From positions 62,001-126,000 of IMG/VR virus record IMGVR_UViG_3300027759_004177: a DNA stretch of 64,000 bases, one strand, 5' to 3'. This document shows, piece by piece, positions 8,909 to 62,793 of the stretch. The notes below the pieces were generated by a model. That model did no database searches. It was given only the letters and a program-made list of their open reading frames with translations, and was not told the DNA's origin. Each line of letters opens with the position of its first letter. The stretch's first letter is position 1. Made by a program: the position numbers and the translations under genes.

Positions 8909-9871
8909 TTATTTCTTCACAATAGATTGCATGGTGTTGAAAACTTTTTGTTGATTTTCCAACAGCATTTCTCTTGTGCCACCAAATGGTGCTGATGCCA
9001 ATGGTCCTAATCTTTTTTGGATTTCTGGATCGCTAAAACCTTTGGCCAACACCAGATATAAATCTCTGACTATGTGGTCAGGTGTTCCGGCTGGTGCCCA
9101 AACTCCAAAAATCGAAGATAACACAAAATTTGGATGATTTTTATTCAACCACACGGCCTTGGTTGCTGGAGGATTGAATTTATTGGCCATGTCTACCCCT
9201 GCTGGGTCAAATGCTCCAATGATTTTTAATTTTCCTGCTTTGACATGTGATTCCGGAACAGAAATGCTGTCAACTGCTATTTTGACATGGCCTCCCAGCA
9301 CATCGGTCAACACTGGACCAGATCCTTTGTAAACTATAAAATTGGGTTCTGGTAGTTTTTCTAGTTCTGCCCATTTTTTGTAGATTGGGGCCATGATGGC
9401 ACTGAATATGCCAATGTCAAACTTTTTGGGGTTTTGTTTTGCCCATGCAACAAATTCTGCATAGTTGTTGAAAGGTGCATCAGCACTGGCATATAAAACC
9501 TGGATACTTGGCACCACTGGAAAAACTGGTACGACACTTTTTGCGGTGTAAGTGGCAGTGGAATCATTTACTAGTCCTGTGTTAAAACTGGCAGTGGCCA
9601 CTACCATGAGATTGTGCCCGTCGGGTTCGGCTTTGGCAAAGTGGTTCATGCCAATCACACCACCAGCACCAGCCATGTTGGTCGTCACTGATTTCCAACC
9701 GTGTTTTTCAAGTATTTCGCTGGTCAGCCGTGCAATAACATCGTTGCTACCGCCCACGGGCCATGGAGTCATGACATCAATGGTTTTGGTAGGTTTGAAA
9801 TTTTGAGCAGATGCTAGGCCGACTGTTAAACCCAGTATCAGAGCGGCAAAGATTTTTGTGATTTTTTTCAT
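8909..9871 (-). CDS. Bug/TctC tripartite tricarboxylate transporter substrate-binding protein
   Basis: signal peptide; PWPVGGSNDVIAR, N.AGAGGVIG, PDGHNL, YKGSGP..TDVLGG, APAGTP. Confidence 0.9.
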   Translation of the reverse strand: MKKITKIFAALILGLTVGLASAQNFKPTKTIDVMTPWPVGGSNDVIARLTSEILEKHGWKSVTTNMAGAGGVIGMNHFAKAEPDGHNLMVVATASFNTGLVNDSTATYTAKSVVPVFPVVPSIQVLYASADAPFNNYAEFVAWAKQNPKKFDIGIFSAIMAPIYKKWAELEKLPEPNFIVYKGSGPVLTDVLGGHVKIAVDSISVPESHVKAGKLKIIGAFDPAGVDMANKFNPPATKAVWLNKNHPNFVLSSIFGVWAPAGTPDHIVRDLYLVLAKGFSDPEIQKRLGPLASAPFGGTREMLLENQQKVFNTMQSIVKK

Positions 9872-10012
9872 AGAAAGATCCTTTGATTTAGAAAATGTGT
9901 AACTAGATATAAGTTTACACTGAGCTAATAAAAAATGCAAGTGGAAAAGCAGAACTTTGGTGAAGTTTCAGCGGAACTTTGCTGTAACTAATTTTATTTA
10001 GCTTTTGGCAAT

Positions 10013-10033
10013 AAAAAAGCCCCCGGAGGGGCT
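10013..10033 (-). terminator. terminator ending tmRNA transcript
   Basis: AGCCCC-tccg-GGGGCTTTTTT on minus strand. Confidence 0.8.
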
Positions 10034-10369: not shown

Positions 10370-11167
10370 TTAAGTTTCTGCGTCAACCTTGGGTTTGGTA
10401 CGCCATTTTGCCAATTCGGATTCAAACTTTTGTTCTAGATCTGCGGTGATAACGGCCTGATCAACCTGTTGTCTTAGTTCATTAGCAAACGTTTCCAATT
10501 GGCCAATGTCGCCCATGTACTTGAACGTGTCTGTGACACGTCTAGTATCGTACGCATCCATGATTATGTGATAGCGGTCCTGATTTGAATCATTGCGAAT
10601 TTGATGCCAGACATTTACCCAAACCATGTAGGCCGTACCAGGTTCCATATACAACGTTTCTCCTTCGGCTGTGAAGGTACATGCAGGATTTGTAATCAGG
10701 GGTATGTGGATACGTGCCATATATTGGTTTTCACCACAATCTCTATGCACCAGACTCTTGCTACCAGCCTTCAGACAAGTTACCCTGGCTCGACGTGGTG
10801 TCAACCCAAATGCCTCAATTTGATCGATGGTCCGAGCAATCTCACCGCAATAGCCCTGTGTGGGTTTCTTGTATTCTAACGAATGTGCAATGTTAAAATA
10901 TTTCAAGGTAGTGTAATTGTTGGCATTTTTAGGAAAGAATACTTCTTCGATAGTGGTGCCTTCTTCGTTTTGAAAAAATTCCCAACCGTCTTGCCAGGCA
11001 CCAGTTTGACTCTGCAAACTCCATCCGCCAAATCCTTTATAGGCATCGGTTTCATATTCTTCGCCTTGCACGACTTGATTGCCCAAAGTAAACACATGAT
11101 TTTTTACATCGGCTACTAACCGGTCATGATCGTATTTGATAAAATTTAATTTTTCATAGAATGACAT
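10370..11167 (-). CDS. aspartyl/asparaginyl beta-hydroxylase-like Fe/2OG oxygenase
   Basis: VHRD...RIHIPLITN...WHQIRNDS..DRYHII. Confidence 0.8.
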   Translation of the reverse strand: MSFYEKLNFIKYDHDRLVADVKNHVFTLGNQVVQGEEYETDAYKGFGGWSLQSQTGAWQDGWEFFQNEEGTTIEEVFFPKNANNYTTLKYFNIAHSLEYKKPTQGYCGEIARTIDQIEAFGLTPRRARVTCLKAGSKSLVHRDCGENQYMARIHIPLITNPACTFTAEGETLYMEPGTAYMVWVNVWHQIRNDSNQDRYHIIMDAYDTRRVTDTFKYMGDIGQLETFANELRQQVDQAVITADLEQKFESELAKWRTKPKVDAET

Positions 11168-11176
11168 CGTACATCC

Positions 11177-11776
11177 TTATAGTGTATTTTTAAATGCTTG
11201 AGCAGCACTTTTATCAAATGTGCCCATGTTACTGGTTACGGATATCCTGGCCTGGCTGGAACAATTGGGTTCTACCATGTGTAATACAAACCCTGGAAAG
11301 AATACCAGTTTACCTTCTGCAGGCTGAATGCGACTAAACTTTGTGCCGTTAACGCCATCATTTCCTGAATCCCAGTCGCATCCATTGCGAGGATCTATTA
11401 GCAATAAGTCACCACAGTTTTCAGGAGCCTTAACATAATAGGTCATTGCAATCTTGGGGCTACCATGTCCATGTATGGGCATACCTTGACCAGGTCGGTG
11501 ATAGTTTATCCAGCCACGAGCATGCCAGAATTCAAATTCCTTGACAGTTGGTGCTATGTAATCGTATGTCTGTGCTTTGACTATTTTGATAGTGTAGTTT
11601 TTTAGTTCTTGTACTCGGGGACTATCGCAGTTCCAAATATTAGAGTTGCCAGCGTCGGCTTCAGGATCACAATATTGGCCAATTTCGTCAAGTAGTTCGT
11701 TGTTGAATTGTTCGTCAAAGTCGGTTTGTATTTCCCACACAGGGGTCACCCACATGTCTGTTTTAGTTATTTTCAT
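11177..11776 (-). CDS. putative 2OG-Fe(II) oxygenase (TIGR02466-like)
   Basis: WINYH...HGH...YYV...DPR...EGKLVFFP..LHMV.PN...RISV. Confidence 0.85.
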   Translation of the reverse strand: MKITKTDMWVTPVWEIQTDFDEQFNNELLDEIGQYCDPEADAGNSNIWNCDSPRVQELKNYTIKIVKAQTYDYIAPTVKEFEFWHARGWINYHRPGQGMPIHGHGSPKIAMTYYVKAPENCGDLLLIDPRNGCDWDSGNDGVNGTKFSRIQPAEGKLVFFPGFVLHMVEPNCSSQARISVTSNMGTFDKSAAQAFKNTL

Positions 11777-12471
11777 TTGAATTGAACCAAGTTGAGTCGA
11801 TTTAAAATCTGCAGATAGTAGAATCCCAAATCAAATTCATTTTTATTTACAGCCATGTTACACAGCCTGCTGTCTCTATGGTGATTGTTGTGTAGTTCTT
11901 CACCAACACACAGTATGCCTACAGGAACAACATTACGAGTATAGTCGCCTAGGTCAAAATTTTTGTAACCGATGCTATGACCAAATACTGTTATTGTTGC
12001 GATTGTTAAAAAATTTACCACAAACAAATGTACAATCCATACGAGAATTCCCAACCAACCAAACAACAGCATGTTGATTAACAATAACAATACAACTCCC
12101 AGTCTTGGATGCCGATCAATAACGGTGTCGGTAGATGCTTCCGCACAGTATCTATGATATTCTTGATCAGAAACTGTTATTTTATACGATCGAAAGAAAC
12201 TTGGAACTAGACAGCACCGCAACAAAGACCAAAAACCAAATCTAGGAGTATGAGGATCATTGTATGAATCCGAGAACTCGTGATGCTTTCTATGTTGTAC
12301 CACAAACTCTCGAGTAACCACATCAAACAAGATCCAATACATGATCTTCATTGCGGTTTCTACTCGCGGAGTCAGGTTGTATTGTCTGTGTATCATATAT
12401 CGATGCATGTACAGGGAAGCCAGCACACAGCCCAGGTGTATGGTCACAATGGTATAGATCAACATCAACAT
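11773..12471 (-). CDS. membrane fatty acid desaturase (delta-9 type)
   Basis: His boxes HRYMIH, HRKHH, HNNHH; TM segments. Confidence 0.85.
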   Translation of the reverse strand: MLMLIYTIVTIHLGCVLASLYMHRYMIHRQYNLTPRVETAMKIMYWILFDVVTREFVVQHRKHHEFSDSYNDPHTPRFGFWSLLRCCLVPSFFRSYKITVSDQEYHRYCAEASTDTVIDRHPRLGVVLLLLINMLLFGWLGILVWIVHLFVVNFLTIATITVFGHSIGYKNFDLGDYTRNVVPVGILCVGEELHNNHHRDSRLCNMAVNKNEFDLGFYYLQILNRLNLVQFK

Positions 12472-12992
12472 AGATTCAATATTTCTAAAACTTGATCATA
12501 CCCTAAATCGTTGGCAGAAACTTGTAAAAACTTTCTTGGCAAACAATTTGTAGAATCAACTCCATGGATGACCTTGCCGTTTAAAATGTACACATCTCCT
12601 GGATAGGCAACAAAACTATCTATTGGTTCTAATTCTTCTATGCGATATGCATGTCCATCACCGTGATCTGCGTAGGTAAACTTTGAAGCATTTTCCGTGC
12701 TTTTGTAAAATGTGGTTCGGTAGTCACCTGTTTCTATGTAGAAATTAATATTGACTTGGTCAACAATATCTGTATGTGGCGGCACTGAGGTTTCTATGTT
12801 AACAAAACTTGTGTAAAAATGTCGACTGTATTCACCAAGTGAAGCGATAAAACGGTCTACGTAATTGGAAGTGACATTAAAGTACTGTATTTTGTTGCCA
12901 TGCGTATCTAATTCAAATTCTATCCGTTTATCTAGAATTTCAAAATCAATGTCGGCAGACGCAGAAAGTTTTTTAAATCGAGAATGAACCAT
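12465..12992 (-). CDS. putative Fe/2OG-oxygenase-like protein
   Basis: PPHTD...INFY...IHGV; start uncertain (12992 or 13022). Confidence 0.6.
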   Translation of the reverse strand: MVHSRFKKLSASADIDFEILDKRIEFELDTHGNKIQYFNVTSNYVDRFIASLGEYSRHFYTSFVNIETSVPPHTDIVDQVNINFYIETGDYRTTFYKSTENASKFTYADHGDGHAYRIEELEPIDSFVAYPGDVYILNGKVIHGVDSTNCLPRKFLQVSANDLGYDQVLEILNLC

Positions 12993-13539
12993 ATTGTCGT
13001 AAAGATTCGTATACTGTTTCATAAGAAAGATCTGTAGTAAACGACAGGGCTTCTCTGTAGTTGGTTTTACTGAGTCCTTCTACGCTGTGTATCTTGCGAA
13101 TATTTAAAAGATATATGTCATGCTTGCGGGCCACAAATTGATCTTCTAACGCCAGATTATCGAGTTTGTAACTGCACTGACATTCTCCAGCACAAAACTT
13201 CTCTACTGTACACTCTGCACATGAAACTGGTTTGGGCTTGGTAAACTCTTCAGACTTTACAGAGAAGAACCGAGTCGGGCAGTTGTTTTCGCTCAGGTAT
13301 ATGTTTATTCTACAACCTATGTCTAGATCCACATGTGGATGTGCATTGTCACCAATGAATGTCATGTAGCTGAGATTAAAATTCTGCTTCAAGTGATCTG
13401 GCAACAGGATATTTCTGCTCAGGTTGGTACGGTAGTATCTGGTCCATCCGCCACCGCAAACGTGTTGTTCGCCCAGGTTTTCAAAGTTGTTGTACAGGCT
13501 TGGACTAATACTATCTAACTTAGTATAGTACCGATTCAT
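12973..13539 (-). CDS. putative Fe/2OG-oxygenase-like protein with Cys-rich insert
   Basis: HPHVD...INIY...IHSV...R; CAEC...CAGECQC insert. Confidence 0.6.
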   Translation of the reverse strand: MNRYYTKLDSISPSLYNNFENLGEQHVCGGGWTRYYRTNLSRNILLPDHLKQNFNLSYMTFIGDNAHPHVDLDIGCRINIYLSENNCPTRFFSVKSEEFTKPKPVSCAECTVEKFCAGECQCSYKLDNLALEDQFVARKHDIYLLNIRKIHSVEGLSKTNYREALSFTTDLSYETVYESLRQYGSFSI

Positions 13540-13934
13540 AGACGTGATTGGAACTCCACCATGGGTGTGGTATCTATGCCTTCTGCCACTACCTGGTCCA
13601 CAGGCTCGGGTATGTTGCGTGCCTGGGCCCACTCTCGGTATTGTGCCACGATAGGACTGGGAGTGTAGTCTATTCCGTCATGCGGATTCTTTAGTGCGTC
13701 ATAAAATTCGTTGCCATACACGATGTAGTTTATCAAAGGATCGCCGGGTAGCAAAAACACTTTGTCTAATATGACCGGGTATTGGTGACACATCTCAAAG
13801 AAACTGTTTCGTTCATCCTCAGTGAGATTGAACACAATGGCGCCAACTTCGGTGTCTAAAAAATACTTGACATACCGGTTGTAATCTTCAGCATCAAAGT
13901 TAACTGGTTGTTTGCCTACAATAATATCGCTCAT
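13536..13934 (-). CDS. hypothetical protein
   Basis: ATGA overlaps on both sides in operon. Confidence 0.75.
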   Translation of the reverse strand: MSDIIVGKQPVNFDAEDYNRYVKYFLDTEVGAIVFNLTEDERNSFFEMCHQYPVILDKVFLLPGDPLINYIVYGNEFYDALKNPHDGIDYTPSPIVAQYREWAQARNIPEPVDQVVAEGIDTTPMVEFQSRL

Positions 13935-14569
13935 AAGTCCTTAATCCTTAACATACTGTTTATAAAACTTTTCAACACCAACCGATCTTTGCTGTCCTTG
14001 GTAAGGTCATGTTTAAAATCTGTAGTCAGGTTTACTCTACATCTCCCCAGGTTCATCTTGACTCCGTGTAGTACATATGATGGCAAAAATATCATGTCGC
14101 CATTTTTAGGGGTTATTGTTTTAATTTCAGTTCGGTGTTCACCGACTCGGCCGGTATCAACATAATAAAATTCACCACCAACATCTGGGCCCTGTATGTA
14201 GTAGCTACAGGCAATAGACGAATCAGGGTGTGCATGGAGTTCTATACGTTCTCCAGCTGTGTTTACATTAAGCCAGGCTCCCGACACAACAAATTCAGCT
14301 CGTTGTGTTGTTGGCATGTATTGATTGACAACCTCAGTGATTACCTCGGTCTTAAAATCAATCAATTCTTGTATACAGGGACTATCATAATCTAATAGAG
14401 ATTCTTTCCCTGAGGCTTCGTCAAACGTGCTGGCAATTTCGTAAAGTTCTCGTAACAACTCTTGATTAAATGATTCTGTAAACGGAGTCTTTTGGTGCCA
14501 CACCGGGCACTCCCACAACGAAGATTTCACACTACTGGCGAAAATACTTTCGTCAATGACCGTGGTCAT
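13931..14569 (-). CDS. putative 2OG-Fe(II) oxygenase (TIGR02466-like)
   Basis: WLNV...HAHP...YY...GDMIFLPSYVLHGV..N...R. Confidence 0.85.
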   Translation of the reverse strand: MTTVIDESIFASSVKSSLWECPVWHQKTPFTESFNQELLRELYEIASTFDEASGKESLLDYDSPCIQELIDFKTEVITEVVNQYMPTTQRAEFVVSGAWLNVNTAGERIELHAHPDSSIACSYYIQGPDVGGEFYYVDTGRVGEHRTEIKTITPKNGDMIFLPSYVLHGVKMNLGRCRVNLTTDFKHDLTKDSKDRLVLKSFINSMLRIKDL

Positions 14570-15474
14570 TTTGCAGCCCTTTGTCCCACACGTTTAAAAC
14601 CAAAGCCTTTAAAGAACGAATAGATTCCAGCACCCGCCAAGGAGGTGTAATAGCTTAGATAAAACAACGCCCACATGGTGTACAAGGTTGGCAAACGATG
14701 GCGGCGTGACTTTTTGCCAACACGTGGCAAGCTGTCAACAAATCGACAAATAGGTTTACCAATCTCCATCAAGATACGACCTTGAACATTGTCTTCGGGC
14801 AATGCACCCATCAAGTAGGCCATGTGTTCTGACCATGGCGTACCAATCTTGATGGCCATGTCCGTGATACGATCTTTTTGTCGTGCCGCACGTTTTTCTG
14901 GGTCAGTGATCCAGGGCATGTACACCGGTCCTTTGCCGTCCATCCAGGCAGTTACAATTCTTGCCCAACGCACATAGCCGCGATACACTCGGCGATCTTT
15001 TTTGCGTAGCCATTGCCCGTACATTTGATCCGCGGCCCAGATGTTTTGATTCATTAGACCAAAGTCGTATAACTTGGCACAAATAATCTTGGAGCAGTTG
15101 CAGGCACAGTTACAGGCATAAGATGTGGTTGTACTGGTACAGTTATATGTGCAGGCACAGTTACAGTTGTTCTGTAACCAACTCTGTGTGTCACAGTTGC
15201 CACAATTGATTTGACCAGTTATGAGACAATTTGTGCAATTTATGTTACCGCAGTTGCAATTTGCAGTACAGTTACCATTGGCACAGTTGGCGCCATCGGC
15301 AGTATTTTGGAAATAGGCTTTGTTATAAAATGCCGTCATACTGGGATTGGCCGGACGCTGGTCGCTACGAATTAATCCATTGAGGAAATTTAAATCTGTA
15401 GAGAAAGTGGCAGCCTGCCCAATTTCGGTGCTGACGTCGCCAACTGCAATTTGTCCGGATGCTGGTAGTGTCAT
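14566..15474 (-). CDS. Asn-Cys repeat protein: tail-tip-type N-terminus, NC-rich core, KIIC domain, C-terminal TM
   Basis: MTLPASGQIAVGDVSTEIG...SMTAFYNK; 16 Cys in aa 64-127, 13 as NC; hydrophobic then basic C-terminus. Confidence 0.8.
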   Translation of the reverse strand: MTLPASGQIAVGDVSTEIGQAATFSTDLNFLNGLIRSDQRPANPSMTAFYNKAYFQNTADGANCANGNCTANCNCGNINCTNCLITGQINCGNCDTQSWLQNNCNCACTYNCTSTTTSYACNCACNCSKIICAKLYDFGLMNQNIWAADQMYGQWLRKKDRRVYRGYVRWARIVTAWMDGKGPVYMPWITDPEKRAARQKDRITDMAIKIGTPWSEHMAYLMGALPEDNVQGRILMEIGKPICRFVDSLPRVGKKSRRHRLPTLYTMWALFYLSYYTSLAGAGIYSFFKGFGFKRVGQRAAK

Positions 15475-15486
15475 GGTAAATTCTCT

Positions 15487-16941
15487 TTATTGAGTATTTA
15501 TGACTGATTCCACCCGACTTTGACCATACACTTCAATTCCTTCGATCTCGCCAACTACTTCACTGACAATTTTGATAGGTATGACTCGTTTCTTTTCAGT
15601 TTCTGTGTGTTCATATATGGTACCAAACACGTCTTGCCGTTCCAAGGGCAACTCGTCCTGTTTGATCAGGGTGGGAATATAACCCGTTATTTTCTCTACA
15701 GCCAGGGCAAACAAGGCCACATTGTCCGAATAGCTGTTGGCACAGCTGACATCCCAGAATTCTTTGTCCAAGAACATGCAGGCACCTTTGCAAAGGTGTA
15801 GTACCGGGCACTTGGGACATTCAGCACGATTTGACCAGTGTGTTGATGTTTTGATAGCCACGTTGTCATAATCGTCTAAATTACCGCCCAAATGGCTTTC
15901 TCCGTTTTTGCCGGTTTCTAGACTGCTGACGTTTTGACAAGTCATCACATTACCACGCAGGTCGATTGCCAACACATGCTCGTCGTCCATGCCGCACTTT
16001 TGTCCTAAGAATTTGGATTCGTCGTGCGCCAGCACGTTTCTAATGAATCCATCGATCTTGTCCAACTGCATCTTGAATCCAATTTGTCCTTGTGTACTAA
16101 AAATATCAGCAAAGGCTGTGCGACGAAATTCAAAATGTTGCTGTTTGGTTTGCAGGCTGTTTTGCATGCCATCAGCATCGTAACTGTCTACAATGCCGCC
16201 TTCGCCCAGAGACACATTGGGGTCTCCTGTGAATTCCACAAACCAGTCATAAATCCGTTTTCTGCTGATGTTTTGTGCATTGAGCATGGGATTAAAGCTA
16301 AAGCCTTTTTTGAGTCTGCTCATCTGACGATAAAATCCCAGGATCTGTTTTTTCTTTTCGGGATCCGCAAACGGATCAGGTCCACGCACATGTTGTCCAG
16401 GACCATCGTGGCTGATTGATACTGTAAAGTTCAATTTCATTAGCCAATCAATTATTTCCTCATTGAGTATGCTGCCATTGGTAATCACACTGAACTGTGG
16501 TTTATGTTTCCAGCCACTAAATTTTTCCAAGATAGCTTCAGCCAAAGGTTTGAGTGTTTTCCAGTAAACAAATGGTTCTCCACCCCAGAACTCAATCTTG
16601 AGGCCTTGGGTTTCATCAAACTCTAGCACTTTGAATTTTTCTAAAAAAACGTCAATGTCTTTCTTTGAAGTTTCTGGAGCACGTTCCACGAACTTCTGTG
16701 AGCAGTAATCGCAAGAGTAATTACAGCTGAGTCCCAACTGTATCTTTAATAGCTGTATCGCACGGCTTTTCTTCAATGGACGATCGCGATCAAAAGCAAC
16801 ATATGGCTTCAAATTGTGTTTGTGTATCTGTGGATATTCAAATACCGTACCATCCTCACTTTTTAAAGTGTTGGTTTCGTTATCGTAATAAAAGATTTTT
16901 TTGTCTGCGGCTGAACGCTCAGCATGAATTTCAAATAGCAT
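15487..16941 (-). CDS. radical SAM/SPASM-domain maturase
   Basis: CNYSCDYC, FWGGEP, ITNG, SISHDG, CG...G.V..C and CPKCPVLHLCKGAC...C SPASM cysteines. Confidence 0.92.
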   Translation of the reverse strand: MLFEIHAERSAADKKIFYYDNETNTLKSEDGTVFEYPQIHKHNLKPYVAFDRDRPLKKSRAIQLLKIQLGLSCNYSCDYCSQKFVERAPETSKKDIDVFLEKFKVLEFDETQGLKIEFWGGEPFVYWKTLKPLAEAILEKFSGWKHKPQFSVITNGSILNEEIIDWLMKLNFTVSISHDGPGQHVRGPDPFADPEKKKQILGFYRQMSRLKKGFSFNPMLNAQNISRKRIYDWFVEFTGDPNVSLGEGGIVDSYDADGMQNSLQTKQQHFEFRRTAFADIFSTQGQIGFKMQLDKIDGFIRNVLAHDESKFLGQKCGMDDEHVLAIDLRGNVMTCQNVSSLETGKNGESHLGGNLDDYDNVAIKTSTHWSNRAECPKCPVLHLCKGACMFLDKEFWDVSCANSYSDNVALFALAVEKITGYIPTLIKQDELPLERQDVFGTIYEHTETEKKRVIPIKIVSEVVGEIEGIEVYGQSRVESVINTQ

Positions 16942-17075
16942 AAACTTCCTTGAATGTACTAGTACTTATCGCTTGCTGTACGGCAAAGATGTTTTATTGA
17001 TCAATCCAGTCGTCGACCGAGATTAAGAGATAAATTATAATGGCTACAAAGATACCAAATGCTATCATACCCATC

Positions 17076-17257: not shown

Positions 17258-17445
17258 GTAATGCTCTGCGAACCCCGGTGGTAATTATACCGTATTGCTA
17301 CGGCCTCCACCCACTCCACGACGGGTTCCGTTAACGCATTGCCAGCGGCCTTTTGGTTTAAAGACTACCACCCACGGGGCACGACCACCGTTTCTCCTTC
17401 GTGCGGGTCACACTAGCCCAGCGTTACCCGGGCGGGTCCTTTAAA
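17258..17445 (-). ncRNA. candidate structured ncRNA (unassigned)
   Basis: GC-rich intergenic segment with nested helices GCCCGG/CUGGGC, GCACGA/UCGUGC, GAACCC/GGGUUC, GGUGG/CCACC and CCGUA-GCAA-UACGG. Confidence 0.55.
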
Positions 17446-17562
17446 ACTATATTTTAGCACACTTACCGGCTTTCGCCTTGCTACCAGAATAATCGGTTCG
17501 GGTAAATGCACTAAAGTATAGTAAGGGGCTAACACGTCTCCCGACGATGCCCTTACGGATTA

Positions 17563-17880
17563 TTACTCAGCTACAGCTTCTGCACGAGCCTTGATTGCTT
17601 CAAGACTTGGCTTGACTTTGGTTGCCTTGGCACTCACAGAGCCATTGTACTTGGCATCAGCTGCATCGATAGCGGCACGATAGTCAGCATTGGCATACAA
17701 ATCCGTGGTCTTCAAGAAAGTGACCAATGCTGGCTTAGACATTGCCTTAGGCAATTCCATAAGATTGATATCGCTATCAGTCTTGGCCAAGATCTTGATA
17801 CGGGTCATGTCGCCGGCAAAACGCACCTTGTACTGACCTTTAGTCTTGCTAACACCACCAACTTTGAACAATTTATCCAT
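17563..17880 (-). CDS. conserved phage hypothetical protein
   Basis: GGAG SD, promoter at 17949-17977. Confidence 0.8.
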   Translation of the reverse strand: MDKLFKVGGVSKTKGQYKVRFAGDMTRIKILAKTDSDINLMELPKAMSKPALVTFLKTTDLYANADYRAAIDAADAKYNGSVSAKATKVKPSLEAIKARAEAVAE

Positions 17881-20412: not shown

Positions 20413-21707
20413 CGGGCACTGGCTACAAAACGTAGATCTCTACTGATTGTGGCCAACTCTTTTTTGCCTTGTGGTCCAGCTTTATGAACTGTGTCTTGAT
20501 CCACATAGGTATCAGGCTCATCAGCTGATGTTGGTTTTACATTCACTGGCTTGTCTGTGCGGGTGTCAAATCCGTGTATGTTTATGCTACGACCATAGCG
20601 ACGCTGTAGTTCTTGCCAAACACGTTGGCCACCTTCACTTTGTTTTTTGTCACTGACCAGGGTGATACCAAGTTGTAAAATTAAAAACGCATACAAGTCA
20701 GCGGCACGGTAGGTGTTCTTGGGTCCGGAGTATGTGCCCATTACCACAAAGCTATCTCGATTTTCAGAATATGAACGACCAGTGGTGGCCAACTGACTAA
20801 TGCGTGTTTCAGGATTGTACACATAGTATGTTGTTGTCCCGCGATCTTTCCAACTCCATAGCTCATATCCGCCGGGCATTTTGCTGACAAAGTCTGTTAA
20901 ATAGTCGGCTTCTTGACCGCGTGGAATAGGTCGACCATCATTGGGCATGACATCCAAGTGTTGGCGCTTGCTTTTGGCCACAGTGGGTACAGCAGTGATC
21001 TCATTGAGATTGTTGGTTAATTCGTACACAGTGGAACCTGCATAATCAGAAACGTCAACACTATATCCCCAGGTGGCGGCGTAACGCCGAACTAGTCGAT
21101 CATACAATTTAGCTCGGCTTTGATTGTTGTCGTCGTCGTCTTTGGTAGCACTGAAACGAATATGCTCTGGATGTTGCTTTTTAATAAACTGTTGTATTGC
21201 ACCTAATACGGTGGCAAACACTCGCTGTGCATCACCTTCGCCAGTTACGTCTTGGCTATTGTTTCTGTGGAACTCAATTTGATATTCGCCATCTTCTTCG
21301 CGGTTAAACATGATACTGAGATACGTGCCATCTGCTAAGGTAGCTAAAGCATCGTAGTCACCAAACTCACCCTTTTCCCATTTGACCGGGTAAGGTTGAT
21401 CAAACGCTTCCATTATGCCAGTGGCTCTGCGTAGTTGTAGATCAAAGTCCACATCGGACTCGTAACGGTTAATAAACCGTTCATAGTACTGTCGTGCTAG
21501 TGCAGGAGTATCAGCTTCAAAGCGATCTACTATCTGTGCGGATCCAGCAGGACGATCTGCGTGATAGATTTCATAACCTTTGTTGAGACGATCACGCACA
21601 CGAGCCATGTGATCCATACGGCGATCAACATGCTTGCCGGCGCCTTGTAGATAGCGTTGTAATGCTTCATCACTAATTTCGTCTAGGAATAATTCTGTAA
21701 TAAACAT
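20409..21707 (-). CDS. multidomain hypothetical protein, possible internal head protein
   Basis: start MFITELFLDE; modules separated by (I/L)xE sites (IMEAF, LNEIT). Confidence 0.7.
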   Translation of the reverse strand: MFITELFLDEISDEALQRYLQGAGKHVDRRMDHMARVRDRLNKGYEIYHADRPAGSAQIVDRFEADTPALARQYYERFINRYESDVDFDLQLRRATGIMEAFDQPYPVKWEKGEFGDYDALATLADGTYLSIMFNREEDGEYQIEFHRNNSQDVTGEGDAQRVFATVLGAIQQFIKKQHPEHIRFSATKDDDDNNQSRAKLYDRLVRRYAATWGYSVDVSDYAGSTVYELTNNLNEITAVPTVAKSKRQHLDVMPNDGRPIPRGQEADYLTDFVSKMPGGYELWSWKDRGTTTYYVYNPETRISQLATTGRSYSENRDSFVVMGTYSGPKNTYRAADLYAFLILQLGITLVSDKKQSEGGQRVWQELQRRYGRSINIHGFDTRTDKPVNVKPTSADEPDTYVDQDTVHKAGPQGKKELATISRDLRFVASAR

Positions 21708-24541
21708 TATGTACTCATCTTGGGTCTGCAACTGAATGCACTTGGATCTTCTGCGCCAATGTTGCGTAACCAACCTTGAGCCTGTGTCCAAGCACTGGTT
21801 TGGTCATGGTCAGCAAATTCGTGGACCACATGTCCTGAATCACGTTCATATATTTGCCACATAGGAACACCATTTGGTGCAGTTACCTGTACAGGATCGC
21901 CTGCACGGTATACCAAAGTAGCATCATCTCGACCAGTCAATTGTTCTATGTAGCGTTTTACTTCAATGGCAATACTTCTGTTATTGTCAGAGGCCGCCGC
22001 TGTTGATACATATCCGTAGATCCTATCGCCGGATTTAACTTCATAATAGTCGCCGGTTGCAGGACGTTGTGTTGAGAATCCTGCAGGGGGCTGATCACCT
22101 GTCTGTGGATTGATGTGGTTTGCCAACTGATCTCGCCAAGGAGGCGTATCTGTAAAGTTCTGAGCAACGTCAGGTTCGGCATCCTTGTCTGCCTGTTGTG
22201 CTCGTATTTCTAAATTGTCAGCATTTTCAAAATCGTGTAGTGTGGCCACTTGCTTTAATAGTTTTTCGGCTTGTTCTCGATCAACTCGTTTAATAGTATC
22301 AATCACACGACCTGTTGGTGTGTAAACAACGTCCCAGTCTTGTTTTTGCTTGTTGGGATCCTTAGGTATCTCTTCAATAGCAAGACGACCTTGTGGTAGT
22401 TTTTGCTCACGTTCAAATTTACGCATAGCTTGTACTAAACCACTCTTACGACCTTCTTGTTCGTAGTGTACTTCGCCAGTCTTGGTATCGTATACTTTCC
22501 AGTTTTTAATTTCTTCGGCTGGGGCTGCTTTGATATTTTTAGCAAGACGCTCACGCTTGGTCAACTCTGGTTCTGGTGCTTCTGGATCTGCTGGACGTAA
22601 GTTAAACCCAATACCTTGATCAGCATATTTGTCGTATACACTATCAGCGGCTGCACCTTTGGTTTCAAACCCATTCAAGATTTCCAATGTTTCTCCGGTG
22701 TTAACATTGTATACTTCCCAGTCACCTGACTCAGAATTTGATGGCAAGAATTTATACTCCTGTTGGAAACCTTCCATACTGCCGCCAGGACTTATCTTTT
22801 GCTTGGCTCGTTCCCATGCTTCTGTTTTGGTATAGCCATTATAGGTCTGTCCCGGTACACGTTTGCCGTAGCTGTCGTACAAGACCCAGTCACCTTTGGG
22901 TTCTTTTTCCAACTGTTTTTCTGCCCAACTCTTTTTAAGATCCGTACTTGAAATTTCGCCGGCAGCAAAACGACTGAACAAATCCAACGCAGGATCACCT
23001 TCAGGTGGGCTGATCAATTTGTATAACTTCTTGTAGTATTCTTTGCGTTCAGCAGCAGGATTGGCTGCCACTGTCATGGCCTTGGCATAACGCATCAAGG
23101 TATTCTTCAGTCGGTTGATATCTTCAAAATAGTTTGAACCGCCAGCTGAGCGAAACTCAATGTACTTGGCGCCGCGTTCCAAGTGTGGCTTGGTACTGTC
23201 GTTGCCACCTTGTGGGTTGATACTGGTGTACTTGCCAAAGCCGTGATTGTTGATCTCTAAAGCCTTTTGTGCCAGCTCCAGTAAATTGTGACGCATTAAC
23301 TCTAATGCACCACCAATGGCTTCTTTGTTACCTCGCACACGTTGACGTATTTTTTTAATAGCAGCTTCGCAGAAGTGATTACCACTGCGACCAAAATCTT
23401 TTAGTACGTGTTCGTCACCCAAGAACAGGGCCAGCTTGACATAATCAACTTGCCCACCTGTGACCGGTAAACTGACACCCATATGGAATCCGGTTGAACT
23501 ATTACTGTAAGCACCGTTTGATTCAGCCCACTCAAAGAAGTTTTCCATTTGACGCAAACATTCTTCCAATGGCATAGGCGGACTCACAATCTCCACTGGC
23601 ATGTTGTCTGAATCGTCGGCATCTAAACTCATGTCTGGTTCAAAGATCCAAGTTTCATCATCACGACGAGCAGAGTGATATCCGCCCGACACCTTGGTCT
23701 TGACACCCAGTTCCTCACTCAAACTCTTTGCCAACTCTCTAGCATTGTCTTCGCTGAAGCCGCCTTCACTGCTTTGACCAGTGTAAGTTATTACCGGCCA
23801 CATCAATTGGAATTCACTGGCGATGTCACTCATCCAACGCAGGCCAACATCACTAAAGAAACCTGAGTCATCGTCCACATAAAAATCATCGCGGAACTCA
23901 TCTAGTGCTTGATCGTAGTACCCGTCTTGATCCTTGATACTTTGTTCAACATCTTCTTCAAGTATTTCTTCCGCCCCTTCTACTGCTTCAACGTAAAGTT
24001 TGTAGTCAGGATTTGATTTAATATAAGCATCAGCTTCGGCACTGGTATCAAACTTTGGTGCTGCCTCGCCAACTGCTTGTATGCGGTCGGCTTCTCTATC
24101 GTCCATGTCCATGCCTTCGACCAAATAGTCGTGTATACGTTCGGTCATTGGGCGTTCGTCTACCCAAATTTTACGTACAAGATCTTCAGCTTCGTCACGG
24201 AATGCACGGTACATTTGATCATCGTGCCATTCCATGTACTTTTCATCTAGGCCATCTTGCAAGCTGTCTAGGTCACGACCGTATGTAGCATAGCCATATT
24301 CATCGTTACTGAAAAAGTCTATGACTTGTTGTACGCTGTTGGCACGTTCGTCGGCATCGTAGTCGGGTTCTGGATCTTCGTCGTACTCGGCTTCACCGCC
24401 TAAGCCTGTAAACACCAGTTCGGCTTCAAAGCCAGCACGTATGCCTTCGGCTTCGGGACTGGCGGCAAAAGCACGAAGACTGCCCGGGCTCATGCGTAGT
24501 TCGTCTAGTTGTTGTTCAGAAAGTAGCTCTTTGTATCGCAT
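21707..24541 (-). CDS. putative amidoligase (COOH-NH2 ligase type 2) with C-terminal repeats
   Basis: GFEAE, EPDMSL, EIVSPP, STGFHMGVS, KYTSIN, IEFRS motifs. Confidence 0.8.
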   Translation of the reverse strand: MRYKELLSEQQLDELRMSPGSLRAFAASPEAEGIRAGFEAELVFTGLGGEAEYDEDPEPDYDADERANSVQQVIDFFSNDEYGYATYGRDLDSLQDGLDEKYMEWHDDQMYRAFRDEAEDLVRKIWVDERPMTERIHDYLVEGMDMDDREADRIQAVGEAAPKFDTSAEADAYIKSNPDYKLYVEAVEGAEEILEEDVEQSIKDQDGYYDQALDEFRDDFYVDDDSGFFSDVGLRWMSDIASEFQLMWPVITYTGQSSEGGFSEDNARELAKSLSEELGVKTKVSGGYHSARRDDETWIFEPDMSLDADDSDNMPVEIVSPPMPLEECLRQMENFFEWAESNGAYSNSSTGFHMGVSLPVTGGQVDYVKLALFLGDEHVLKDFGRSGNHFCEAAIKKIRQRVRGNKEAIGGALELMRHNLLELAQKALEINNHGFGKYTSINPQGGNDSTKPHLERGAKYIEFRSAGGSNYFEDINRLKNTLMRYAKAMTVAANPAAERKEYYKKLYKLISPPEGDPALDLFSRFAAGEISSTDLKKSWAEKQLEKEPKGDWVLYDSYGKRVPGQTYNGYTKTEAWERAKQKISPGGSMEGFQQEYKFLPSNSESGDWEVYNVNTGETLEILNGFETKGAAADSVYDKYADQGIGFNLRPADPEAPEPELTKRERLAKNIKAAPAEEIKNWKVYDTKTGEVHYEQEGRKSGLVQAMRKFEREQKLPQGRLAIEEIPKDPNKQKQDWDVVYTPTGRVIDTIKRVDREQAEKLLKQVATLHDFENADNLEIRAQQADKDAEPDVAQNFTDTPPWRDQLANHINPQTGDQPPAGFSTQRPATGDYYEVKSGDRIYGYVSTAAASDNNRSIAIEVKRYIEQLTGRDDATLVYRAGDPVQVTAPNGVPMWQIYERDSGHVVHEFADHDQTSAWTQAQGWLRNIGAEDPSAFSCRPKMST

Positions 24542-61065: not shown

Positions 61066-62793
61066 TTAAGTAATCTCTTGCCAACCAATTTGTGCCAAGA
61101 CATCTGCGTTGTTTGATGTTGCTGCCATGGCCAGTGTGATTATATCGCTAACTCCTGCCAGTGTTCTACCTAATTGAAAGGCAAACGCATCTGCCCCCAG
61201 TTCGGAAAGTTCTCTACTGCTGACATAGCCGGCCTGTAGTTCCGTGCCGCCTGATAAGGCAGTTGCGGCTGTGTCATATTCTACTGTTCCCGAACTACTG
61301 GTTCCTGCCCAGTTGGCATTAGTTAGGGTAGGATTTAATACCAATTTCCAACGATAGTAGTTTACAGTAGGACTTAGTACATCCACTTGTCTGGGCAACA
61401 CAATAGCATCTAATCTTGTGCTGTCCAATCTGATACTAACTACGGGATAGTATGTTCCTGCCGAAGATAGTCTCAATACCGAAGTACCACGCCCGGCTGT
61501 TTCACTGTAAGTAAAAGCATTGTATCCACCTTCACTGATAACTGTGGAACAAATTTGTCGCATCATACTGTCACCACTGGTACCTGCTGTGTTTGTTATT
61601 TCATAACGCACTGGCAATATTGCAGTGGTCATATATGTAGTGGTATTGCCTGCTACGTTGGCATGATGGAACGTATGGCACAGCACATAGGCACCGTTGA
61701 CGACAAAACCACAACGAACAGAGCCCACGCCTAACCATTCTATATCTGTCCAAAATATCTGTGTTCTATCTACATTTAATGCGGCAAATGGATTGTCCCA
61801 AGCATCTTGTCTTATCCTATCCTCAACCAACGCACCACTACTGTAACTTCTTATTACCAAATAGTTATAGGCACCATCGTTTTCAAAGTAGATACCATTG
61901 TTGGTAGTAAAATACCCCACACGTTGACGTAGATTGGTCTTGGGTGTGTTCATACAGAAAGTTGTTAGCACCAACAGACTTTTACCTGGTTGATAAGGAA
62001 ATACTCTTTTTGTTTCTCTTATGACACTAGATCCACTGATGGCAGTTACGTTCAATAGGTATGTGGAACTATCAGCATCATATACTACTGTTCCACCAGT
62101 GGCATTGACATTACTAAAATCACTGTGATCGTAGTATCTTGCTTTGCTGTCGAACAATGTGTATGGTTCGCTGACACGCAGTCTACCAAACGCATCAGTT
62201 GATCCTGAGCCTAGGGTAAATGTACTGGTTCCTGTTAATGTAGCAGTTACATTGCCATCTACTGTAATACTGCCACCGCCATCAGCAATGTTTACATTAC
62301 CGGTAACACCGGGCATTTGTGTAATGCTCACATTGCCAGTGATACCTGGCAGTTGACCAATGTTTACATTACCACTCACTCCTACGGTGCCTGTGATGGC
62401 TGGTAGTGTTGTTATAGCAACTATGTTGCCCAAGATTGCAACGTTACCTGTGACGCTAACATTGCCTGTGATTGAGGGCAAGGTTGTTATACCAGTGATG
62501 TTGCCCGTAACAGTAACATTAGCGTTGCCGGTTGTTACCCAAGGTGTTGTACCTTGATTGACAACCAACACATTGCCAACAAGATACACCGGTATACGTT
62601 GTGCTTCGGTGTTGTTGACTCTAACAGCATCAAGTACATTGACATTACCACTTACTGTGATGTTGTCAGACCCAAGGGTCACACGTAGGTGTGGTTCACC
62701 TGATGTATCATAGGTTAATGCTTTGTGAACATTTAATAGGTTAGGTTCATTGGGATGAACGTAGTTGGTGCTGTTAGGATTCTGTACGCCCAT
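61066..62793 (-). CDS. probable virion structural/fibre protein
   Basis: TGNV..T..P repeats, DAFGRLRVS, lectin-like beta C-terminus. Confidence 0.6.
   Translation of the reverse strand: MGVQNPNSTNYVHPNEPNLLNVHKALTYDTSGEPHLRVTLGSDNITVSGNVNVLDAVRVNNTEAQRIPVYLVGNVLVVNQGTTPWVTTGNANVTVTGNITGITTLPSITGNVSVTGNVAILGNIVAITTLPAITGTVGVSGNVNIGQLPGITGNVSITQMPGVTGNVNIADGGGSITVDGNVTATLTGTSTFTLGSGSTDAFGRLRVSEPYTLFDSKARYYDHSDFSNVNATGGTVVYDADSSTYLLNVTAISGSSVIRETKRVFPYQPGKSLLVLTTFCMNTPKTNLRQRVGYFTTNNGIYFENDGAYNYLVIRSYSSGALVEDRIRQDAWDNPFAALNVDRTQIFWTDIEWLGVGSVRCGFVVNGAYVLCHTFHHANVAGNTTTYMTTAILPVRYEITNTAGTSGDSMMRQICSTVISEGGYNAFTYSETAGRGTSVLRLSSAGTYYPVVSIRLDSTRLDAIVLPRQVDVLSPTVNYYRWKLVLNPTLTNANWAGTSSSGTVEYDTAATALSGGTELQAGYVSSRELSELGADAFAFQLGRTLAGVSDIITLAMAATSNNADVLAQIGWQEIT

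Follow-up and report, generated by a model that had tools for sequence, protein, structure and literature searches.

Gene content of the cassette

The window, a 64,000 nt stretch of DNA (positions 62,001 to 126,000 of the IMG/VR record IMGVR_UViG_3300027759_004177), belongs to a 357-kb freshwater phage. Between 16941 and 10370 it carries nine co-oriented ORFs on the minus strand. Following the direction of transcription, the junctions are a 12-nt gap, overlaps of 4, 4, 7, 50, 7 and 4 nt and a 9-nt gap. The features are as follows.

16963..16969 (-), ATAAGTA motif 21 nt upstream of the rSAM start codon, a possible phage promoter element not of the T4 late type
15487..16941 (-), radical SAM/SPASM enzyme (rSAM), 484 aa, with three predicted [4Fe-4S] sites
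15495..15502 (-), CATAAATA, one mismatch from the T4 late promoter TATAAATA, inside the 3' end of the rSAM gene and 28 nt upstream of the ATG of the Cys-rich gene
14566..15474 (-), Cys-rich protein, 302 aa, made up of the following three parts
15289..15474 (-), residues 1-62, N-terminal adaptor domain (MTLPASGxI...)
15094..15288 (-), residues 63-127, Asn-Cys (NC) repeat region, the presumed site of modification
14566..15093 (-), residues 128-302, invariant SKI.C junction, helical domain and a C-terminal hydrophobic/aromatic helix
13931..14569 (-), PF13759 2OG-Fe(II) oxygenase (a)
13536..13934 (-), 132-aa helical protein of unknown function
12973..13542 (-), HxD..H..R protein (189 aa from the ATG at 13542), paralogue of the next gene, probable 2OG oxygenase
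12465..13022 (-), HxD..H..R protein (185 aa), probable 2OG oxygenase
11773..12471 (-), short membrane fatty-acid desaturase-family enzyme, accessory to the cassette
11177..11776 (-), PF13759 2OG-Fe(II) oxygenase (b)
10370..11167 (-), Asp/Asn beta-hydroxylase-family enzyme, core member of the cassette
10018..10033 (-), terminator-like GC hairpin followed by a T run, downstream of the last gene

The first-pass annotation had described an operon of this composition behind a TAAGTA motif, and this observation is confirmed. TAAGTA lies at 16968-16963 as part of ATAAGTA. The genome holds 35 copies, of which 9 lie within 60 nt upstream of an ATG compared to about 1.2 expected.

The rSAM matches Pfam Radical_SAM (PF04055, 39.9 bits, cut-off 29.5) and the NCBIfam SPASM domain TIGR04085 (33.2 bits, cut-off 27), as well as phrog_1802 (E 2e-66). 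The cluster motifs CX3CX2C (C73/C77/C80), CX13GX4C (C316..C335) and CX2CX5CX3C..C (C375, C378, C384, C388, C400) are invariant in 16 homologues. In contrast, the protein scores below the cut-off of every characterised maturase family. The best model is the ranthipeptide maturase PapB (NF047865) with 79.8 bits against 340, aligned over 4-318 of 330, while QhpD (TIGR03906, 64.6 against 453) and the anaerobic sulfatase maturase (TIGR03942, 51.6 against 349) score lower. Hence the enzyme does not reach the cut-off of any of these families and a PapB-like way of working is an analogy only.

According to its translation, the Cys-rich protein has Cys at positions 64, 69, 73, 75, 80, 83, 91, 94, 104, 106, 108, 112, 121, 123, 125 and 127, that is 16 Cys in 64 residues. 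Thirteen of them follow Asn and six fit NxxC. A chance arrangement can be excluded as the protein has at least 417 homologues, in which the Asn and Cys columns are equally invariant. Across 120 homologues the repeat region holds 13-31 Cys, and its length varies from 67 to 158 residues.

Both PF13759 oxygenases exceed the Pfam cut-off of 27 (a, 41.6 bits; b, 54.5 bits) but not the TIGR02466 cut-off of 62.5 (35.8 and 48.8 bits), so that they are TIGR02466-like only. The Asp/Asn beta-hydroxylase-like enzyme scores 49.3 bits for Asp_Arg_Hydrox (PF05118, cut-off 22.6). The desaturase scores 42.7 bits for PF00487 (cut-off 29.7) and shows three His boxes (HxxxxH, HxxHH and HxxHH), but it does not reach the DesA equivalog (163.7 bits against 400). 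The two HxD..H..R proteins have no Pfam or PDB sequence hit. Their family alignment has invariant H83, D85, H153 and R163, while hhalign to a 2OG-FeII_Oxy_3 family is weak (65%). Their fold was not modelled, and these data do not decide whether they are 2OG-Fe(II) oxygenases in the strict sense. The 132-aa protein is found in 70 loci. Its AF2 model has a pLDDT of 80.8, but no fold match was found in the PDB or in AFDB clusters.

Conservation of the rSAM and NC-repeat pair

An absence of conserved linkage between the enzyme and the Cys-rich gene across phages had been put forward in advance as an outcome that would speak against an enzyme-substrate pair. We examined the neighbourhood of the rSAM. 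In 80 of 81 viral loci it is located next to the Cys-rich gene, directly upstream of it. The Asp/Asn beta-hydroxylase-like enzyme occurs in 69 of these 81 loci at 50-65% identity. The desaturase was found in only 27 of 81 and sometimes lies between the rSAM and the Cys-rich gene.

In bacterial genomes, 48 of 50 rSAM homologues in bacterial or prophage loci with at least 3 kb of upstream flank lie about 1.4 kb downstream of a gene with an NC-rich ORF. All 58 such ORFs are co-oriented with the rSAM, and none lies on the other strand in 920 kb. In 42 of 58 the repeat (NCNCNC..C) ends at the last residue. Of ten NC-tailed proteins tested, seven hit PHROG tail-fibre families, two of which also carry collagen repeats. 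In prophages the NC repeat is the literal C-terminal tip of PHROG or collagen-type tail fibres. PF13759-type oxygenases lie in between, beside the rSAM: two families of the prophage modules, f2 and f10, are homologous to the PF13759 family of the cassette at 97-99% hhalign probability. The cultured phages JWF and RSP15 carry the rSAM inside their tail-fibre modules. Altogether the pairing recurs in well over a hundred phage and prophage loci.

The rSAM was moreover present beside 5 of 5 additional NC-type proteins sharing the N-terminal domain, whereas it was not seen beside 2 of 2 non-NC members in the flanking DNA examined. In the phylogenetic analysis the cassette rSAMs form one group. The rSAMs of a Polynucleobacter locus (L088) and of a further locus (L089) are successive sisters to it, and the joint clade of 27 has a support of 100, in line with co-evolution.

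One could assume that the genes are an incidental cluster of auxiliary metabolic genes, with oxygenases and a desaturase acting on host lipids or lipid A (LpxO-like), an rSAM for some small molecule and a functionally unrelated Cys-rich gene. PF13759 oxygenases and desaturases are indeed filed as auxiliary genes in PHROGs, and the Asp_Arg_Hydrox family also holds lipid A hydroxylases, a point not tested here. However, the pairing of rSAM and NC repeat persists across two unrelated genomic contexts and gene orders, with no desaturase or Asp/Asn beta-hydroxylase in the prophage version, and start and stop codons overlap throughout the operon. This alternative is already disfavoured and seems very unlikely.

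Domain architecture of the Cys-rich protein

A profile of the N-terminal 62 residues finds 447 representative clusters. In the 150 listed, the match starts at the N-terminus in all but two very long proteins. In other proteins the domain is joined to Gly-rich, lectin-type, Hint or endosialidase-chaperone domains, including Peptidase_S74, Hint, Gly_rich_2, GLEYA/PA14 and Fibrinogen_C. Hence it appears to be an adhesin or fibre-tip adaptor rather than a leader peptide, as the first-pass annotation had inferred. The window protein itself has no Pfam, PHROG or NCBIfam hit, and with the evidence resting on its relatives its membership in a tail-fibre or adhesin family is not settled by sequence. 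AF2 gives no confident fold for the N-terminal domain or the NC region (pLDDT below 50 in the latter).

In locus L088, a distal-long-tail-fibre-type protein with an S74 chaperone is followed by a roughly 130-aa protein made of the N-terminal domain plus the NC region and then by the rSAM, a gp37-then-gp38-like order. The link to gp38 is only indirect. It consists of a weak Atlas lead at 0.71 and a precomputed PF05268 hit on the relative P0238 that a fresh hmmscan did not reproduce. The modules after the repeat seem interchangeable: there is nothing, Hint (JWF gp028, from residue 308), S74 (sister protein P0122, from residue 132) or the helical domain.

The helical domain of the window protein (pLDDT 77-89) is shared with cyanophage SynMITS9220M01 gp028 and with a DUF4815 protein. 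It ends in a hydrophobic helix flanked by basic residues that could anchor the protein in a membrane. In T4-like phages the cassette sits among replication, lysis and auxiliary genes (gp32, gp59, an exonuclease and an endolysin) and not in a tail module, and no tail genes are adjacent in the window. Together with the membrane desaturase inside the cassette in some loci, this allows for the alternative that in the T4-like and jumbo-phage cassette the protein is not part of the virion. It would rather be a tail-anchored membrane or host-directed factor derived from an adhesin gene, e.g. for superinfection exclusion, envelope remodelling together with the desaturase or a tethered RiPP-like product. 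We consider this unlikely. The best 19-residue Kyte-Doolittle mean of 0.99 is below the usual threshold of 1.6 for a membrane span, leaving membrane insertion uncertain. The same C-terminal domain ends a protein encoded between 'fiber protein' and 'tail fiber' in SynMITS9220M01. Sister proteins with 79% identical N-terminal domains carry a fibre-specific S74 chaperone. The promoter data described below argue in the same direction.

A late promoter box upstream of homologues of the Cys-rich gene

Exact TATAAATA is located 28-40 nt upstream of the Cys-rich gene in 22 of 53 distinct homologous upstream sequences, mostly from T4-like phages, compared to a background of 0.8% of 120-nt windows. Upstream of the enzyme genes it was found in 0-2 of 45-62 sequences. 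The window itself has only the one-mismatch box CATAAATA at -28, which leaves undecided whether the gene is a T4-type late gene in this phage. Contigs from RNA libraries cover the operon only thinly, and DNA carry-over cannot be excluded.

A putative maturation system for phage fibre tips

Taken together, our data suggest that the 302-aa protein is a late-expressed, adhesin-like protein of the tail-fibre tip (gp38-style), and we hold this reading with moderate confidence. In this view the N-terminal 62 residues dock the protein, and the NC repeat is the working part, matured in the cytoplasm by the adjacent rSAM. The most likely chemistry would be a ladder of Cys-S-to-Asn-C-beta (ranthionine-type) thioether rings across the overlapping NxxC motifs, whereupon the co-encoded 2OG-type and AspH-type oxygenases would hydroxylate residues of the same region. 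The product would be a compact knot at the fibre tip that does not depend on the redox state, which a phage cannot get from disulfides in a reducing cytoplasm. The helical domain occupies the position that the self-cleaving Hint or S74 modules hold in sister proteins and is probably an assembly or release module.

The earlier proposal, that the phage may crosslink and hydroxylate a receptor-binding tip, is thus supported, and each of its inferences that could be tested by computation held. This support comes from comparison and not from chemistry. Gene content, conserved linkage, domain architectures and promoter placement were demonstrated here, whereas the type of cross-link, the hydroxylation of this substrate, its incorporation into the virion and the removal of the C-terminal domain are deduced. 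No mass, structural or proteomic data exist for any member; neither thioether formation nor presence in purified virions was measured, and it was not shown that all five oxygenases act on the protein. Chemical precedents are known, as NxxcB makes Cys-Asn beta-thioethers at NxxC (PMC9389541) and CrpC installs ranthionines on a whole protein (PMC13692751).

The reaction type is open given the sub-threshold scores of the rSAM. The pair may be a true enzyme-substrate pair on a fibre tip without thioether cross-linking. The NC repeat might bind metal or Fe-S along a trimer axis or form disulfides after lysis, or the rSAM might act otherwise, such as by anSME-like oxidation of Cys, epimerisation or C-C coupling. 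The rSAM matches anSME, DynA, cyclophane-forming and PapB models over its full length at similar sub-threshold scores, and the depositors of JWF called it an anaerobic sulfatase-maturating enzyme. Alternating CxCxC presumably places the cysteines on one face of a strand, and disulfide-linked fibres exist in cyanophage Pam3 (PMC9942802). However, the Asn columns are as invariant as the Cys columns, as expected if Asn is a reaction partner. The sequence shows no CxPxR-type sulfatase motif, and the top-scoring model is a ranthipeptide maturase. A plain metal site would need no dedicated rSAM, yet the rSAM tracks the NC type specifically. We thus regard this possibility as rather doubtful.

In the broadest reading, which we consider about as likely as not, phages of several unrelated lineages (lambda-like prophages of freshwater Burkholderiales, the cultured phages JWF and RSP15, T4-like phages and this jumbo phage) share a tail-fibre maturation system, for which no description was found in the searchable literature. 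A dedicated SPASM rSAM and 2OG oxygenases would convert a genetically encoded (Asn-Cys)n tip into a thioether-laddered, hydroxylated receptor-binding knot, with Hint, S74 or helical modules as interchangeable release domains. If so, RiPP-type natural-product chemistry would be used to build a virion part.

Comparison with known systems

AspH hydroxylates Asp/Asn in Cys-rich EGF domains, and here likewise an Asp_Arg_Hydrox-family enzyme is encoded with an Asn- and Cys-rich target. This target is unproven, and by eye the EGF consensus C-x-[DN]-x4-[FY]-x-C-x-C is not present in the NC region.

The Peptidase_S74 intramolecular chaperone and Hint domains are self-cleaving C-terminal modules of tail fibres. 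In sister proteins they start right after the NC repeat. The C-terminal domain of the window protein in this position is all-helical and matches neither family, and cleavage is only inferred.

T-even gp38-type adhesins at the tip of the gp37 long tail fibre are small proteins with an N-terminal docking domain and a variable receptor-binding C-terminal part. Similarly, the NC protein of L088 is encoded just after a distal-fibre gene, and relatives of the N-terminal domain carry Gly_rich_2. In contrast, the receptor-binding part here is an Asn-Cys repeat with a dedicated modifying enzyme, and homology of the N-terminal domain to Gp38_N is only a weak lead.

CrpC/CrpA of Methanococcus voltae and QhpD/QhpC are precedents for a SPASM enzyme installing ranthionine-type links in a folded, Cys-rich protein rather than a peptide (PMC13692751), and QhpD is among the top NCBIfam hits. 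These are cellular proteins of unknown or enzymatic role, with neither an NC-repeat motif nor oxygenase partners. Sequence similarity is limited to the rSAM core.

The NxxcB/NxxcA and PapB ranthipeptide systems (Cys-to-Asn/Asp beta-thioethers, PMC9389541) share a SPASM rSAM encoded beside a Cys-rich substrate with repeated NxxC-type motifs. The cassette does not represent a RiPP cluster in the strict sense, which comprises a short precursor with an N-terminal leader and a C-terminal core, released by a protease or exporter. The substrates are structural-type proteins of 130-620 aa, and no protease or transporter gene is found in the cassette or the prophage module, although in most prophage versions the modified motif is C-terminal like a core. 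Moreover, several oxygenases are co-encoded and the system is carried by phages.

Setting and gene content of the operon

The 356,865-bp IMG/VR virus record, of which bases 62001-126000 were analysed, is a jumbo phage. Near-identical DNA occurs in freshwater metagenomes from at least seven studies. A blastn search of the operon against 50,697 phage records gave no match. Features in and around the operon are the following (window coordinates).

8909-9940 (-): TctC/Bug-type periplasmic tricarboxylate-binding protein (PF03401, 97.7 bits), just downstream of the operon
10018-10033: terminator-like hairpin
16941 to 10370 (-): nine ORFs with overlapping or nearly abutting ends
12973-13542 (-): one of these ORFs, a 189-aa HxD..H paralogue with an extra five-Cys cluster (CxxC...C...CxC) that its 185-aa neighbour lacks
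16969-16963: ATAAGTA motif
16994-17074 (-): 26-codon ORF encoding a single hydrophobic helix, just upstream of the ATAAGTA motif and the rSAM gene
17270-17560 (-): about 290 nt of GC-rich, non-coding sequence that looks structured, between the 105-aa gene and the 56-aa gene upstream of the operon
17563-17880 (-): 105-aa protein without family hit
21707-24541 (-): 944-aa ORF with an Amidoligase_2 domain (30.2 bits) and a weak match to a cap-snatching-endonuclease-like domain, without PHROG family

The first gene of the operon encodes a radical-SAM enzyme (rSAM) with a full SPASM domain, and all ten cluster cysteines are invariant across 16 homologues. The second gene encodes 302 residues with 16 Cys between residues 64 and 127. 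Thirteen of these are Asn-Cys, and six NxxC motifs arise from the NCNC pattern. The remaining genes encode two PF13759 oxygenases, a 132-aa unknown protein, two paralogous proteins with invariant H-x-D...H...R, a short fatty-acid-desaturase-family protein and an Asp/Asn-hydroxylase-family protein. Whether the additional five-Cys cluster of the 189-aa paralogue is conserved was not examined. The description of this operon in the first-pass annotation is accurate. The TAAGTA motif pointed out there is part of ATAAGTA, which is enriched about seven-fold upstream of start codons in this genome.

The 105-aa protein is 75-94% identical in several otherwise diverged cassette loci (viral loci L003, L053, L054, L065 and L085) and always lies a short way upstream of the rSAM. 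No Rfam family matched the GC-rich spacer next to it at E up to 0.1; the spacer was not folded. The 132-aa protein was modelled, but fold searches with this model hit nothing, and hence the idea that it is a discrete RRE/PqqD-like protein is not supported. Profile searches of PDB sequences with the 132-aa family, the 185/189-aa family and the N-terminal domain of the Cys-rich protein gave chance-level hits only.

The Cys-rich protein consists of three parts

Residues 1-62 form a conserved N-terminal domain. Residues 63-127 are the NC region, in which Asn and Cys are equally conserved, whereas its length ranges from 67 to 158 residues and its Cys count from 13 to 31 in 120 homologues. AlphaFold gives this region a pLDDT below 50. 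An invariant S-K-I-x-C is followed by a confidently predicted helical domain and a terminal hydrophobic/aromatic helix. A membrane-span reading of this helix is weak, as its Kyte-Doolittle mean of 0.99 (median 1.1 in the 120 homologues) is too low to call it a membrane span.

The protein has no family hit of its own, and its own genome holds no paralogue of any of the three parts. A tblastn search with the full protein found only the C-terminal domain, in one cyanophage, while the N-terminal domain alone found nothing usable. Fold searches with the model of the Cys-rich protein hit only uncharacterised proteins that share the C-terminal domain. Atlas searches gave only weak leads, namely Gp38_N at 0.71, and none for the C-terminal domain. 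By eye, the EGF-type AspH consensus is not present in the NC region.

The rSAM is linked to the Cys-rich gene in phages

A lack of conserved linkage between enzyme and Cys-rich gene across phages had been put forward in advance as an outcome that would speak against the proposed modification. A scan of viral contigs with the family alignment returned 80 loci. The rSAM lies directly upstream in all of them except one locus that is cut off by the contig end. The core set comprises the rSAM, the Cys-rich protein, the 132-aa protein, a PF13759 oxygenase, an HxD..H protein and the AspH-like enzyme, whereas the desaturase is present in only 27 of 81 loci. Most of these phages are T4-like. There the cassette sits near gp32, gp59, an exonuclease and an endolysin, and not in a tail module.

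Linkage to tail fibres outside the cassette

The main new evidence comes from other genomic contexts. The cultured phages Ralstonia RSP15 and Achromobacter JWF encode rSAMs 47% and 44% identical to that of the window, in both cases inside their tail-fibre modules. The fibre-like gp028 of JWF contains an NCNCDCNCNCS run immediately before a Hint domain that starts at residue 308, and the side-fibre gene of RSP15 ends in NCQCGN.

A scan of 185,579 species genomes with the rSAM alignment gave 80 loci, mostly prophages of freshwater Burkholderiales. Of the 50 loci with at least 3 kb upstream, 48 have an NC-rich ORF. All 58 such ORFs are on the strand of the rSAM at a median distance of 1.4 kb, and no such ORF lies on the opposite strand in 920 kb. 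In 42 the repeat ends at the very last residue, for example ...NCNCNCACDCCC. Seven of ten tested hit PHROG tail-fibre families, and two of them also carry collagen repeats. Together with the prophage hits in Limnohabitans and Polynucleobacter, the tricarboxylate-binding protein downstream of the operon hints at a freshwater Burkholderiales host of the phage.

The usual module is composed, in this order, of central fibre J, two genes, the NC-tailed fibre, a 280-aa unknown, one to three oxygenases and the rSAM. The oxygenase families are homologous to the PF13759 family of the cassette at 97-99% hhalign probability. The conserved protein of about 280 aa directly after the NC-tailed fibre gene (prophage locus L099:6372-7229 and 41 other prophage loci; RSP15 gp047, L083:5314-6129) has no Pfam or PHROG match and could be a fibre chaperone or a further partner of the system. 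The triad of NC repeat, SPASM rSAM and PF13759 oxygenase is therefore conserved in two unrelated contexts, and in one of them the presumed substrate is clearly a tail fibre.

The N-terminal domain is shared with adhesin-type proteins

An exhaustive profile search with the N-terminal domain found 447 representative clusters. In the 150 listed, the match starts at the N-terminus in all but two very long proteins. Of the best 150, 83 are NC-rich, and many are only 120-170 aa long and end in a Cys-rich tail. A Pfam scan of 75 of them found Hom_end Hint in 11, Peptidase_S74 in 7, Gly_rich_2 in 5, and GLEYA/PA14 and Fibrinogen_C in one each. These are adhesin heads or fibre self-processing modules. 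P0122, a member of this family, has an N-terminal domain 79% identical to that of the window protein, followed by an NC region and an S74 chaperone that starts at residue 132, right after the repeat.

In the Polynucleobacter locus L088, a distal-long-tail-fibre-type protein with its own S74 domain is followed by a roughly 130-aa protein made of the N-terminal domain plus the NC region, and then by the rSAM. This is the gp37-then-gp38 gene order, although the gp38 link is weak. Look-ups of five NC-type members all found the rSAM beside them. Two non-NC members had tail genes nearby but no rSAM in the DNA examined. Moreover, the cassette enzymes form one group in the rSAM tree. The enzymes of L088 and of locus L089 are successive sisters to it, nested among the fibre-associated enzymes, so the enzyme tracks its substrate type.

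A possible late promoter upstream of the Cys-rich gene

The genome shows T4-style late promoters, as 11 of its 18 TATAAATA copies lie within 60 nt upstream of an ATG. The same holds for 9 of 35 copies of ATAAGTA. The two motifs, with examples in the window at 1972, 16969, 45581, 57321 and 57832, are enriched upstream of start codons and may mark two promoter classes; the gene sets behind each were not annotated.

An exact TATAAATA lies 28-40 nt upstream of the Cys-rich gene in 22 of 53 distinct upstream sequences. It occurs upstream of the rSAM gene in 2 of 52 and upstream of the four downstream enzyme families in 0-1 each, against a background of 0.8% of windows. The window has CATAAATA at -28. 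In many sequences the box is written into the last codons of the rSAM gene. In the viral loci L011, L015, L019, L026 and others it is encoded by the C-terminal ...DDIN(T/N)... codons of the rSAM, such that the promoter is embedded in the coding sequence and kept at a fixed distance from the next start codon. Metatranscriptome contigs from three runs match the operon exactly but thinly. They carry no strand or 5'-end information and DNA carry-over is possible, and hence we do not count them as proof of expression. A private late promoter fits a structural protein made in bulk, with the rSAM already in place.

Possible function and comparison with known systems

The first-pass annotation proposed that the phage may cross-link and hydroxylate a virion receptor-binding tip. 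This interpretation is supported by comparison, while no chemistry has been done and no virion data exist. Linkage, domain architecture and promoter placement are read from the sequences, whereas the action of the rSAM on the NC repeat is inferred. So is the rationale for the system, namely that thioethers can be made in a reducing cytoplasm, where disulfides cannot. The oxygenases probably hydroxylate the same region, but this is unproven.

If the chemistry is confirmed, this would be, as far as the searched literature shows, the first case of radical-SAM (RiPP-type) cross-linking applied to a virus structural protein, specifically the part that contacts the host. Literature searches for radical SAM or SPASM together with tail fibre found no prior description. 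It would explain how a phage assembled in a reducing cytoplasm gets a covalently stapled, Cys-rich tip. Moreover, it would add a family of protein-modifying SPASM enzymes with a simple, portable recognition motif ((N/D)C repeats at a C-terminus) and give a function to some of the many orphan PF13759 oxygenases in aquatic phages. As the cultured phages JWF and RSP15 carry the enzyme inside their tail-fibre modules, the idea is directly testable.

The helical C-terminal domain also ends gp028 of the Synechococcus phage SynMITS9220M01 (L082:4669-6519), a 616-aa protein encoded between 'fiber protein' and 'tail fiber'. This protein has a weak Ig-like hit (17.3 bits, below cut-off), a Gly-rich part, a run of about 35 prolines and then about 8 arginines ahead of the shared domain. 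In the window protein the domain sits where Hint or S74 sits in sister proteins. We thus propose that it is an assembly or release module.

With regard to the enzyme, the rSAM is below every equivalog cut-off, but the best-scoring model is a ranthipeptide maturase. NxxcB makes Cys-Asn beta-thioethers at NxxC motifs (PMC9389541), and CrpC shows that whole proteins can be substrates (PMC13692751).
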